Part shown: in pieces, positions 23,702 through 60,970 of the stretch
Numbering within the stretch: position 1 is the stretch's first letter
How the letters are laid out: every line of letters begins with the position of its first letter
Assembly: GCF_037042905.1 (NCBI RefSeq)
Contig: NC_087251.1
Location: forward strand, 31,558,001 to 31,622,000
DNA length: 64,000 nucleotides
Origin: Lytechinus pictus
Taxonomy: Eukaryota
Direction of reading: 5' to 3'
Translations under genes and position numbers: made by a program
Notes under the pieces: generated by a model
Databases searched by the model: none
The model's input: only the letters and a program-made list of their open reading frames with translations
What the model was told of the DNA's origin: nothing

Positions 23702-24048
23702 TCAACTAAACTCTTTCATGAAAAGCTCTAAGGTAATAGCCCTGCATTCCTTATTTAGCTGAGGGATCATGGCTGAGTGAGACCAATGATAGCGCTTTAC
23801 GATGGAAGACTCTTTCAGGATCAACTTCTGCCAAGATGACTTGTAATCCCCAAGAATAAAGTAAGTCTGTCCAACCTCTAGGTTTGGACATCGGCAGCGG
23901 CCAGACCGCGAGTACTGTGAGATTGAGATCCTGCGTCCTGCGTGTATGGCAGGAAGGTCGTAAGCTCTCTTGTGGAGTTCGTCAACAAAGATATTCAGTC
24001 GCAATTCATTGTTGAAACGATGCGCCTTCCGGACTGTACCCGTTATCA
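23702..24048 (-). CDS. HHIPL: HHIPL terminal exon, NTR/C345C-like domain
   Basis: VITGTV...[16 protein letters not shown]...SSIVKRY...C; acceptor TTTACAG; TGA at 23702-23704. Confidence 0.75.
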
Positions 24049-27000
24049 CTGTAAATGAAGATTGATCAAAATTGGTAAAAAAAACATGCTATTGTCAAAT
24101 CTTACAAATGAGGCATTATAAGAAGCTTATGTTCAGTTCCAAATCAAGCCCAAGTTCTTTGATTTAACACAAACTTGTAGTTGATTTAAATTCAATTGCA
24201 ACTCAATTTTATTGAATTGCCCTGTTACACTTGATTTGAAATTAAAAGTAATGCCAAATAAGTCACTCAATTATGACAGATAAAATAACTTGGGATAAAA
24301 GAGTTGTTTCACTGTGGTTCATGAAATTTAAACAAAAAGATTAAAAAAAAATATATAGACTTAGGTGGATGATGAGTTTTCATTTTGAATGTAAATTCAG
24401 CTTAGATAAAGTTGAGATAACATAACAATTGTTTGTTGAAGTTTGCATTTCATTATGCTTTATAATATAATTCAGTGATTACTTTATTATGCAATGGCAC
24501 TAAAAAAAATTAAAAGAGCATGAAAGAAATAAAATGAAAAAAAAATCAAGCATATTTTTACAATATATTGCAAATATTAAGCATATCTCTTTGTGTAACT
24601 ACCCCTCCGATATATCAGGGTGCGACATAAGTGCTTGCCCGATTTTCCGGGGCAAGTAAAAGTTAGAGTCGGGCAAGTGTTTTCAAGCAAAGACAAAAAC
24701 TGATTGCCCGAATCGGGCAAGTAAAATTCTCCTATGGAAATTATATTTTAGAAAGATTTCCCATATTTCACCATCAAAATATAGAAAAGAAAAAGAGACA
24801 AAAAAAGCAATATCATTAATTTCTTCTTTAAAAAAAGTTTATAAGTCAAGATTCGAATTGCAAAATTTGCGCTATTTTCTGCAATAAACACACAGCTCAG
24901 AGACGTACACACACACACAGAATCAATGGCAGTCTAGCATACCTAGCTAGCTAGCGCCTAGTCCACGCAACCGATGCATGTAGTTAAGTTTCTACGGAGT
25001 ATGGTGCTGCACGAACGAAGAAATCTCCCACAGAACTGTCAAAATTCACATTTCTTACCAATGAAAATTCTTGTAATGTCCATATTTCCTAAAAATTGGG
25101 GTAGCTCTGTCATTTGTAAGCAGTAAAAGGAGAAATTTTTACTTCTGTTATGCTTCAAAAAGATCGGGTTTCGAATGATCCTCTGTATCGCACACACTGA
25201 AATACTTTGTTTGACAGTCCCACATATGCATTTGTGTGTATGTTGATAAACGTGGTTTCTTTTGTAACTATTTTAGTCAAGGAAATTGAAAAATTTTCTT
25301 CTTTATTTATGACTGGATAGTTTGAGCTTTCTTCCTCTCTATTTTCTTTCTTTCTGCCTATCTTTCCTTCTTTTCTTTTCAACCTTTCCTTCTTTTTAAT
25401 CTCTCTTTTCTTTAAATTTCCTTCCTTCTTTTGTTCATTTTTTTCTGTTACTATATAGCTGTCTTTCTTTTTGTCATTCTTTTCTTTCTATCTTTTTTTC
25501 TTTCTTCCTTCCAACCTTTGTTTACCTCTTTCTTTAATCCTTCCTTCTTTTTCCCCTTCCTTTCATTCTTCCTTACTTTCTTCATCCCTTTCATTCTTTC
25601 TTTCCTTCATTCCTTCCTTTCTTTTGTCTTTCATTCTTTCTTTCTCCTTCCTTCTTTATTTCTGTCTTTCGTTCTTTTGATCTTTCTTTTTTCGATCCAT
25701 CCTTTCTTTTCTTCCTTATTTTTTCTTTCTGCCTTCCTTCATTTNNNNNNNNNNNNNNNNNNNNNNNNNNNNNNNNNNNNNNNNNNNNNNNNNNNNNNNN
25801 NNNNNNNNNNNNNNNNNNNNNNNNNNNNNNNNNNNNNNNNNNNNNNNNNNNNNNNNNNNNNNNNNNNNNNNNNNNNNNNNNNNNNNNNNNNNNNNNNNTC
25901 TTTCTTCCTTGCTTTCTTTCTTTCCATCTTTCTCTTCCCCGCAGCCATTCTCTCTCTCTTTCTTTCTTTATTTCTTTTTTTTTTCTTTCTTCCTTCCTTA
26001 ATTTCTTTGTCCTTTCTGTCTTTCTTCTTTTTTTTTCTTTCATTCTCTCCCCCTCTCTTAATTTCTTTTTTTTCCTCTGGTTATTTTCAGTGATTTCCCT
26101 TTTTTTCATTGTGTGTCCTAGTCCCCTCCAAAATATATGGAAAATATATGAGATTAGGAAATTAATTAAAGAGCATATTGACCATATATTTTGTCATGAT
26201 GTTCAAGATAAAAATCATTAAAAAAAAAGAAATACAACTACAAGGTACATCAGTAGTCTTGTTGAAAAATGTATTTTTAAAGCCGTCAATGGTATGGTAT
26301 GTAAAACCATAAGGCTACAACTTGTTTTGAAGCAATAAAACTTTGTTTTGAAGGATTTTTTCGGGCAATTAAATCTATATTCGGGCAAGTATTTTCCAAC
26401 TATTTGAAAATTTACTTGCCCGACTGGGCAAGTGCTTCAAAAAAGTTATGTAGCACCCTGTATATTAACTCTATCTTTAAACATAAAGATTACCCTTTAA
26501 AACCTTGAAAATACATACCAAACTTTGCTTCGCAGTATGTGTTATTGTCGACCTCCAAGTAATCTCCTTTGCATTTCTTAGGGCATCTGAGGTTTTCTGA
26601 ATAGCAGGATCGAAACAAGAACCTTCCATGTTACCACTGCATCTTGGAAGAGGTAGATTAACATAGCGTAGATGTTCATAGTGATGCAAGCTGGTTGGCA
26701 TGGCAACAAGAAGATGATGTATAAAGAGGAGAGCTAAGCATAGCACAGCCAAGTGATATGGAGGATGCAGGGTCACACATATTGCACTTCCTGTTGGTAG
26801 GGAATGGGGTAGAGGTAATGATCATTTTAAGCAAGCTGTATATATATATTTATTCTAAATTATAAGTAAGCTTCAGGAAGGAGGATGCGATAAATTAGGC
26901 AATATGGATGGTAGCTTAGCGGAATAGCAGGAAAGATATCTGTCTGCGGAAAGAGTGATTGATGCATGTGTTGCCTACTAGTTCAAAAGGGACCTACTAC

Positions 27001-60900: not shown

Positions 60901-60970
60901 ACTTGCCGTAACCATGGCAATGATTGCAAGGATGACAATGATGGAGTAGCGATTGAGCAGCATGGCATAT
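45845..60970 (-). CDS. DISP1: Protein dispatched homolog (RND/sterol-sensing-domain Hedgehog exporter), spliced gene; extreme N-terminus not located
   Basis: Exons 60970-60847, 50004-49659 and 48996-45845 join in phase at AG/GT sites. The junction rebuilds the Dispatched motif IPDFSDPIA|GFEPRGT. TM4 has GVGADDAFV and TM10 has GLSIDFTVHYG; FPFMNLT and SMFVTSFTTASAF also match. About 1206 aa in the window. Confidence 0.93.
49659..50004 (-). CDS. DISP1: Dispatched exon (ECD1 linker, GFEPRGT...LCGTP)
   Basis: Acceptor TTTCAG, donor C|GTAAGT; phase 0 to phase 1 fits both neighbours. Confidence 0.9.
51332..51746. mobile_element. CAGGGTGCTACATA-TIR element, copy 3
   Basis: Same termini; flanks TTTAAG/TATAAG. 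Confidence 0.88.
52842..54046. mobile_element. TTAA MITE family B containing a second family-B copy at 53167-53761
   Basis: Two left ends followed by two right ends; the inner copy is flanked by TTAA. Confidence 0.9.
55236..55820. mobile_element. TTAA MITE family C (AGGAAACCAAAA termini)
   Basis: TTAA|AGGAAACCAAAA...TTTTGGTTTCCT|TTAA; palindromic body. Confidence 0.88.
56327..56864. mobile_element. CpG-rich MITE with internal perfect palindromes
   Basis: GAGCCTGTTCA/TGAACAGCCTC ends; 46-bp perfect palindrome at 56343-56388. Confidence 0.78.
60847..60970 (-). CDS. DISP1: Dispatched exon (TM1, PDFSDP)
   Basis: Acceptor CATTACAG, donor GCG|GTAAGT; YAMLLNRYSIIVILAII...DIPDFSDPIA. Confidence 0.88.

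Follow-up and report, generated by a model that had tools for sequence, protein, structure and literature searches.

Neighbouring Dispatched and HHIP-like genes on chromosome C7 of Lytechinus pictus: a probable by-product of an old linkage group

The stretch of DNA analysed here (the window; 64,000 nucleotides) belongs to chromosome C7 of the sea urchin Lytechinus pictus. It carries a DISP1 orthologue and an HHIP-like gene (HHIPL), both on the minus strand (Table 1). Dispatched, a sterol-sensing membrane protein of the RND type, serves in the release of lipidated Hedgehog. The DISP stop codon (45845) and the HHIPL ATG (34403) are separated by 11,441 bp (34404-45844), within which there is no recognisable host gene. 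This arrangement, two genes on a shared strand about 11.4 kb apart, had been read from the sequence in the initial annotation and was confirmed with Pfam and tblastn. The two genes are thus immediate tail-to-head neighbours in L. pictus.

Table 1. Features of the DISP-HHIPL locus (positions in the window unless marked C7)
Feature	Position	Strand	Remarks
HHIPL last exon, residues 631-745, NTR/C345C module and stop codon	23702..24049	-	Pfam
Assembly gap (N)	25745..25898	.	last HHIPL intron
HHIPL exon 7, about residues 599-630, start of NTR module	26520..26615	-	
HHIPL exon 6, about residues 576-606	29378..29470	-	
HHIPL exon 5, about residues 547-576	30036..30125	-	
HHIPL exon 4, about residues 492-555	30748..30942	-	boundaries approximate
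HHIPL exon 3, about residues 458-503	31527..31664	-	
HHIPL exon 2, residues 348-457	32431..32760	-	
HHIPL exon 1, residues 1-347	33363..34403	-	signal peptide, Folate_rec-type CRD, start of GSDH propeller
HHIPL 5' UTR and transcription start (inferred)	34404..34500	-	stranded depth stops; transcript contig ends at 34438
Intergenic interval	34404..45844	.	11,441 bp, gap-free, no recognisable host gene
High-copy repeat	34900..36100	.	partly fitting RNA reads on both strands
Degenerate LINE fragment	36122..38380	+	endonuclease frame, stop, then truncated reverse-transcriptase frame (Pfam)
High-copy repeat	38300..39300	.	RNA reads on both strands
DISP1-like large terminal exon, residues 197-1246, sterol-sensing domain	45845..48997	-	stop codon 45845-45847
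DISP1-like coding exon, residues 82-198	49654..50004	-	tblastn
DISP1-like coding exon, P0001 residues 39-81	60847..60975	-	tblastn
DISP first coding exon, residues 1-40	C7:31624536-31624655		outside window; tblastn

The open frame that contains the terminal DISP exon (45845-49027) has Sterol-sensing, Patched and MMPL matches in Pfam, all above the cut-offs. With 'protein dispatched homolog 1-like [Lytechinus pictus]' (P0001) the predicted protein shares 99.7% identity, and the P0001 residues align with exons at 60975-60847, 50004-49654 and 48997-45848. Since residues 1-40 are encoded beyond the window, the gene does not start at position 60970. L. pictus has eight DISP-like genes. In our tree the window copy alone falls inside the clade of echinoderm and chordate DISP1 genes (100/100 support), the other seven lying outside. 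On these sequence comparisons the window gene is the canonical Dispatched orthologue, and a role in Hedgehog release is predicted for it.

The HHIPL gene runs from the ATG to a stop codon at 23702-23704 in eight exons that match 'HHIP-like protein 1 isoform X1 [L. pictus]' (P0121, 745 aa). Pfam finds a Folate_rec CRD (residues 21-130), a GSDH domain and an NTR domain; the predicted product is a secreted protein that combines a CRD and a six-bladed propeller with an NTR module. The assembly gap between the exons at 26615-26520 and 24049-23705 costs the protein no residue, and an NTR end is likewise found in the orthologues of other species (amphioxus, hemichordates, crinoid and sea star). HHIPL appears to be single in L. 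pictus, genome searches having returned this gene only. In a midpoint-rooted tree from which HHIP itself was left out, the HHIPL genes of invertebrate deuterostomes group together as sister to the HHIPL1+HHIPL2 clade, and by this phylogeny the urchin gene is the pro-orthologue of vertebrate HHIPL1 and HHIPL2. The CRD and propeller core and the motif GDGG..GDPFG..GNAQN are common to the urchin protein and both vertebrate paralogues. Vertebrate HHIPL1 has an SRCR domain, and, unlike the urchin protein, neither vertebrate paralogue has an NTR match.

To our knowledge, the function of HHIP-like proteins is largely unknown outside mammals. Vertebrate HHIP has an N-terminal CRD followed by a six-bladed GSDH-type propeller. 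Both are also present in urchin HHIPL, residues 176-588 of which align with the HHIP structures 7pgm and 3ho3 (E 5e-70, or about 1e-70). At the C-terminus HHIP has two EGF repeats, whereas urchin HHIPL ends in the NTR/C345C module and has no EGF match in Pfam. The proteins also differ in the blade-3 loop of the propeller, where the zinc-coordinating EEMDG of HHIP is GNAQN in urchin HHIPL (DDMEEMDG aligns with GRYGNAQN). The alignment places a Gln of the urchin protein opposite the Asp of HHIP that we take to be the ligand residue for the Hedgehog zinc. All 31 HHIPL sequences examined have the ancestral motif and no HHIP-type zinc loop. In HHIP this loop takes part in binding Hedgehog by coordinating its zinc ion, and PEG-cholesterol binds HHIP-N (the CRD), which provides a precedent in HHIP itself for the idea that a CRD accepts sterol (PMC8660895). 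In human cells, HHIPL1 and HHIPL2 reportedly enhance Hedgehog signalling (PMC9695228, PMC12848035); a Hedgehog role for HHIP-like genes has, according to a review, been shown in one human cell type only (PMC9695228). The Hedgehog-specific link proposed for HHIPL in the initial annotation, as a carrier or antagonist, is therefore not supported; that its CRD might accept the sterol of the ligand is a conjecture with the HHIP precedent behind it.

The interval between the two genes contains no run of N (the window has three N gaps in all, one inside HHIPL). It is occupied in part by high-copy repeats and by the plus-strand remains of a LINE, an endonuclease piece (36173-37357) and a reverse-transcriptase piece (37403-38380; Pfam). 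Beyond these pieces, the open frames of positions 1-23700, of the intergenic interval and of positions 61000-64000 yielded no Pfam match, and an Rfam search of the window gave zero matches. When the DISP locus of Strongylocentrotus purpuratus was compared with the window by blastn, matches fell in the coding exons and in some patches of intron, and no non-coding conservation was detected 3' of the DISP stop. As nothing was collinear past that stop, the comparison leaves the intergenic region without an anchor.

Stranded RNA reads (three runs of one study), covering the 33900-39899 half of the interval, bear on whether the genes share a transcript. Strand-specific depth is 3-9x on HHIPL exon 1, falls to zero at 34500-34700 and stays near zero to 34900. 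The LINE fragment is without RNA reads: depth is zero at 36100-37900, and from there to 38100 it does not exceed single reads. HHIPL has its own transcription start near the ATG, and the two genes are transcribed independently. Read-through from DISP into HHIPL, which had been suggested as a force maintaining the linkage, is not supported, given this start and the zero depth (single reads at most) upstream of it against 3-9x on exon 1.

The closeness of human DISP1 and HHIPL2 on 1q41, also put forward earlier, holds in part: they lie within one 1.05-Mb interval, with five genes (TAF1A, MIA3, AIDA, BROX and FAM177B) between them (PMC4195946). Orthologues of much of this block, HHIPL2-TAF1A-MIA3-AIDA-BROX-FAM177B-DISP1, are on urchin C7, namely those of DISP1, HHIPL1/2, AIDA, TAF1A and FAM177. 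The local arrangement differs: the human pair spans five genes and about 1 Mb, whereas the urchin pair adjoins and the other members of the block are 3-16 Mb off. AIDA maps to 28.3 Mb of C7, DEGS to 37.9 Mb, TAF1A to 46.9 Mb and FAM177 to 47.9 Mb. C7 makes up 6.1% of the genome, and the presence of all four on it has a chance probability of about 1e-5. The control gene, hh, maps to C3. A search for the BRO1 family, aimed at BROX, found loci on three chromosomes (C1, C2 and C3) but not on C7, the family being multi-member. DYNC1H1 is at C7:31.48-31.51 Mb, its start about 67 kb downstream of HHIPL; human HHIPL1 and DYNC1H1 are both presumably in 14q32, and a literature search found no paper placing those two together. 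AIDA, TAF1A, FAM177 and DEGS, the neighbours of the human pair, are not known to have a Hedgehog role; as they too are on C7, the linkage needs no functional explanation. Conservation is seen at the level of the linkage group, which is macrosynteny of a known kind.

Adjacency itself was sought in other deuterostomes. On OV696689.1 of the amphioxus Branchiostoma lanceolatum, a pair of HHIPL genes (14.25-14.29 Mb) and DISP1 (22.25-22.29 Mb) are 8 Mb apart. In the sea star Patiria miniata, two chromosome-scale records carry the genes, one of 48.5 Mb with DISP and one of 41.6 Mb with the HHIPL orthologue, so even chromosome-level linkage is not universal. In Asterias, Ptychodera, Saccoglossus, Antedon and Diadema setosum (HHIPL at OZ188199.1:3.616-3.625 Mb), the 10-kb flanks of HHIPL show no similarity to DISP; such flanks are narrower than the 11.4-kb spacing of L. 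pictus and would miss it. Other genes are called beside HHIPL in Asterias and Antedon; in Asterias rubens these are an aminotransferase gene and an amine-oxidase gene. In S. purpuratus DISP (AAGJ06000005.1:8.87-8.91 Mb) and HHIPL are on the same 45.2-Mb record, and the 10 kb that follow DISP contain no HHIPL exon. In Discoglossus pictus DISP1 and HHIPL2 share a 454.65-Mb record, which speaks to the same chromosome only. Scaffolds of Diadema antillarum were dropped as evidence on adjacency, since the two HHIPL proteins of this species share no more than 67-72% identity with the D. setosum orthologue and are thus paralogues. A literature search found no paper describing DISP-HHIPL synteny. Overall, DISP and HHIPL follow the pattern of bilaterian ancestral linkage groups: they remain on one chromosome in amphioxus, urchins and tetrapods and their local order is lost, Patiria departing from the pattern. 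The proposal of microsynteny at the deuterostome level is thus not supported by amphioxus, Patiria and the five taxa with 10-kb flanks, and the adjacency in L. pictus is probably lineage-specific.

We consider it probable that the two are separate genes from an ancient shared linkage group whose adjacency arose in one lineage. DISP and HHIPL would have belonged to this group together with AIDA, TAF1A, FAM177, DEGS and DYNC1H1, the group corresponding to human 1q41-q42 (and presumably 14q32). Shuffling within the chromosome would then have brought them side by side in the urchin lineage. In other deuterostomes they lie megabases apart or on different chromosomes. The adjacency, we infer, is fortuitous or lineage-specific and not selected. 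Two observations sit less easily with this explanation. Immediate neighbours are not likely to arise by chance (roughly 0.1-0.3%) where a chromosome has more than 1,000 genes, and the human orthologues are close too, so the adjacency may be a remnant of ancestral proximity. The latter thought can be taken further: the pair, perhaps with DYNC1H1, could be a relic of an ancestral deuterostome block, with no function implied, that was kept in urchins, loosened in vertebrates into DISP1+HHIPL2 in 1q41 and HHIPL1+DYNC1H1 in 14q32, and lost through separate breaks in amphioxus, hemichordates, crinoids and sea stars. The pro-orthology of HHIPL to HHIPL1 plus HHIPL2 is in keeping with such a relic, as are the adjacency in L. 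pictus, the 1.05-Mb human interval and the position of DYNC1H1 near HHIPL in the urchin and, presumably, in 14q32 with HHIPL1 in human. However, the genes would have to have separated independently at least four or five times, five unrelated genes lie between the human pair, and the urchin counterparts of other block members lie megabases away; we regard the relic as rather unlikely. To a similarly low degree we entertain that DISP-HHIPL-DYNC1H1 is the surviving fragment of a block older than the two vertebrate genome duplications, of which the urchin may keep the undivided arrangement, possibly through regulatory elements within or beside a partner gene.

Less likely still is that selection holds the pair together through shared enhancers or a regulatory domain coupling Hedgehog export with an HHIP-family carrier or antagonist. 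The co-oriented, uninterrupted arrangement would suit this, as would the binding of PEG-cholesterol by the HHIP CRD (PMC8660895) and the reports of HHIPL1 and HHIPL2 promoting Hedgehog signalling in human cells (PMC9695228, PMC12848035). Yet HHIPL has its own start and no read-through, the interval consists of repeats and a LINE fragment with no non-coding conservation to S. purpuratus 3' of DISP, the adjacency is missing from the other lineages checked, HHIPL is without the zinc-binding loop of HHIP, and hh is on another chromosome. That a mis-join in the assembly united two unlinked genes is very improbable. The three N gaps of the window, one of them inside HHIPL, might raise this suspicion, but there is none in 34404-45844, the HHIPL gap is intronic, the exon order is that of the orthologues in other species, and S. 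purpuratus has both genes on one record.

In closing, the adjacency is real and has the look of an ordinary by-product of an old shared chromosome. The evidence favours plain conservation of a linkage group combined with a lineage-specific adjacency, which makes the pair a weak guide to function. Had selection held the pair together since ancient times, this would be a pointer to an extracellular partner, so far unrecognised, for the Hedgehog that Dispatched releases, and to a testable role for the HHIP-like proteins. The canonical urchin DISP can now be told apart from its seven divergent paralogues, and the human 1q41 block has been mapped to urchin chromosome C7. Finally, L. pictus is genetically tractable, and with HHIPL apparently present in one copy a knockout there would be simple.

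The Dispatched (DISP) open frame matches P0001, the NCBI protein 'dispatched homolog 1-like [L. pictus]', at 99.7% identity. The HHIP-like gene (HHIPL) encodes P0121, annotated as 'HHIP-like protein 1 isoform X1 [L. pictus]', a protein of 745 aa that maps to the window in eight exons, the final one encoding an NTR/C345C module. The third N run falls in an intron, between P0121 residues 630 and 631, with no residue lost. As the propeller-then-NTR order is also common to S. purpuratus, Diadema setosum, Asterias, Antedon, Ptychodera and Branchiostoma, the finding is unaffected by this gap. 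Downstream of HHIPL, the segment 16001-18000 shows a local rise in GC content (0.43 against about 0.34) and open frames without a Pfam match; it may be a repeat, or an unannotated gene may have its promoter or first exon here.

Features of the window (G000:C7:31558001-31622000, Lytechinus pictus) and related loci; plain positions are window coordinates, C-numbers are L. pictus chromosomes
Feature	Position	Strand	Remarks
N runs (n=3)	9039-9168; 23160-23306; 25745-25898
DISP open frame	45845-49027	minus	1060 codons; Sterol-sensing, Patched, MMPL domains
DISP exons (P0001 mapped)	60975-60847; 50004-49654; 48997-45848	minus
DISP N-terminal 40 residues (P0001)	C7:31624536-31624655		encoded beyond window edge
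HHIPL exon 1	from ATG 34403	minus	347 codons; Folate_rec-type cysteine-rich domain and GSDH propeller start
HHIPL exons	34403-33363; 32760-32431; 31664-31527; 30942-30748; 30125-30036; 29470-29378; 26615-26520; 24049-23705	minus
HHIPL stop codon	23702-23704	minus
LINE endonuclease frame	36173-37357	plus
LINE reverse-transcriptase frame	37403-38380	plus	truncated (profile positions 5-134 of 205)
GH31 glycosidase gene (locus L029)	C7:31653784-31658700	minus	~30 kb upstream of DISP start codon
Dynein heavy chain gene (loci L016, L024, L017, L025)	C7:31483000-31514500		same strand as HHIPL, ~67 kb downstream
Aida_N + Aida_C2 (AIDA)	C7:28.29-28.30 Mb
TAF1_subA (TAF1A)	C7:46.89 Mb
FAM177 (FAM177B)	C7:47.87 Mb
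Lipid_DES (DEGS)	C7:37.90 Mb
BRO1 (BROX and others)	C1, C2, C3 only
HH_signal (hedgehog)	C3:60.03-60.05 Mb		control
Further DISP-like genes (n=7)	C13:15647345-15666529; C3:30440866-30464710; C2:8890101-8892614; C2:35458470-35460968

DISP and HHIPL are genuine neighbours in L. pictus, and their adjacency is no artefact of the assembly. The interval between them (34404-45844; 11,441 bp) is free of N, and the initial annotation was right that these same-strand neighbours have no recognisable host gene between them: the interval holds a LINE fragment and repeats (two blocks, at 34900-36100 and at 38300-39300, look like high-copy repeats in both the RNA and the contig data), its other open frames gave no Pfam match, and Rfam gave none either. 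A patch of about 400 bp at 39300-39700, set apart from both genes, shows strand-specific RNA at ~7x in two of the three runs; its first mates, like those of HHIPL, map to the plus strand. Either an unannotated exon or a non-coding RNA could account for it, as could a strand-biased repeat. Past DISP on the upstream side, the nearest recognisable gene is the GH31 glycosidase gene. On the other side, between HHIPL and the dynein gene, minus-strand frames at C7:31541464-31543941 (locus L019) with an RNase-H-like (RVT_3) match and a weak tyrosine-recombinase match point to a mobile element of the DIRS or Crypton type.

Eight DISP-like large exons occur in the L. pictus genome: besides the window copy on C7, there are three on C3 and a further two on each of C13 and C2. 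In a maximum-likelihood tree, the window copy alone falls inside the echinoderm and chordate DISP1 clade (support 100/100), the other seven forming long branches outside it. Those seven have intact exons of 820-860 codons, in tandem arrays on C13 and C3 besides the two on C2, and represent an expansion of predicted Dispatched-like transporters. HHIPL, found at one locus only in two genome searches, appears to be single-copy. Its tree separates a clade of vertebrate HHIPL1 plus HHIPL2 (100/100) from the invertebrate deuterostome genes, a split that makes the urchin gene the pro-orthologue of both. Lineage-specific duplications are seen in amphioxus, hemichordates, crinoids and Diadema. Among these are tandem pairs in Branchiostoma lanceolatum (L002:1600-22196; one copy with the NTR, one without) and Ptychodera flava (L006:10001-27629; both with it).

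The proposal that the pair represents deuterostome-level microsynteny is not supported by the other genomes compared. In B. lanceolatum (OV696689.1), the HHIPL pair (14.25-14.29 Mb) and DISP1 (22.25-22.29 Mb) are on the same strand but ~8 Mb apart. In Patiria miniata, DISP lies on a 48.5-Mb record and HHIPL, an orthologue by the HHIPL tree, on a 41.6-Mb record. Searching the HHIPL loci of Asterias, Ptychodera, Antedon, Saccoglossus and Diadema setosum with three DISP proteins (tblastn) found no DISP similarity within 10-kb flanks; such flanks are too short for the 11.4-kb spacing of the L. pictus pair, yet Asterias and Antedon have other genes directly beside HHIPL. In Asterias rubens these are an aminotransferase gene and an amine-oxidase gene, and in Antedon a 1717-residue gene without a Pfam match and an adhesion-GPCR-like gene. 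The single called neighbour in Saccoglossus is unrelated; Ptychodera flava has the tandem duplicate downstream and no gene called upstream. In S. purpuratus both genes are on one 45.2-Mb record; with introns there ~3x the L. pictus length, the absence of HHIPL from the 10 kb downstream of DISP counts neither for nor against adjacency. The human parallel holds only in part: DISP1 and HHIPL2 lie within a 1.05-Mb deletion of 1q41 that lists HHIPL2, TAF1A, MIA3, AIDA, BROX, FAM177B and DISP1 (PMC4195946), but with five genes between them they are not immediate neighbours. In Discoglossus, DISP1 and HHIPL2 share a 454.65-Mb record.

What is conserved is the linkage. When the L. pictus genome was searched with Pfam families marking the human neighbours, all four single-locus families (4/4) fell on C7, which at 49.7 of 811.7 Mb is 6.1% of the genome (chance ~1e-5). 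As the AIDA, TAF1A, FAM177 and DEGS families are all on C7, DISP and HHIPL are members of a conserved linkage group. Human DEGS1 is near 1q42, and DEGS2 near HHIPL1. The dynein gene is a cytoplasmic dynein 1 heavy chain orthologue (DHC_N1 match; E 1e-63 against human DYNC1H1 structures). Human DYNC1H1 and HHIPL1 are both in 14q32, and the dynein-HHIPL proximity hints at a second conserved linkage.

We consider it probable that two independent genes of this linkage group became, or stayed, adjacent in this urchin lineage. That the adjacency is instead a remnant of an older DISP-HHIPL block, perhaps with DYNC1H1, is an improbable reading. Selection for co-regulation is less likely still on present evidence. 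Read-through, envisaged as one means of keeping the genes together, did not appear in three stranded, rRNA-depleted L. pictus RNA runs mapped over 33900-39899, on the HHIPL 5' side. HHIPL exon 1 is covered 3-9x with all first mates on the plus strand, which denotes minus-strand RNA in most stranded libraries. Upstream of it, no reads fall at 34500-34700 and almost none from there to 34900; between 36100 and 37900 neither strand has any coverage, and up to 38100 there are single reads at most. The drop upstream of exon 1, together with the end of a 1463-nt transcript contig at 34438, places a separate HHIPL start 35-100 bp upstream of the ATG.

HHIP binds Hedgehog through a propeller blade 3 loop that coordinates the ligand's zinc ion, and its CRD has a KD of 23 uM for PEG-cholesterol (PMC8660895). 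In alignment to HHIP structures, HHIP LDDMEEMDGLSDF stands opposite a 17-residue segment of urchin HHIPL. The motif GDGG..GDPFG..GNAQN, typical of sugar dehydrogenases, is kept in 31/31 HHIPL sequences examined, human HHIPL1 included. Where HHIP has EGF repeats and vertebrate HHIPL1 ends in an SRCR domain, urchin HHIPL has the NTR/C345C module (23702-26615, exons 7-8). This end is also found in amphioxus, hemichordates, crinoids and sea stars, and in some S. purpuratus isoforms but not others; the CRD and NTR combination recalls secreted Frizzled-related proteins. By likeness to HHIP, a CRD that may accept sterol is a reasonable candidate idea. HHIP proper is vertebrate-specific, and a Hedgehog role of HHIP-like genes has been shown in one human cell type only, according to a pathway survey (PMC9695228); a 2025 paper gives HHIPL2 a positive role in lung cancer cells (PMC12848035). 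The HHIP-like name is insufficient to class urchin HHIPL as a Hedgehog gene. DISP and HHIPL are two among many genes retained on one ancestral chromosome, most of them without a Hedgehog connection.
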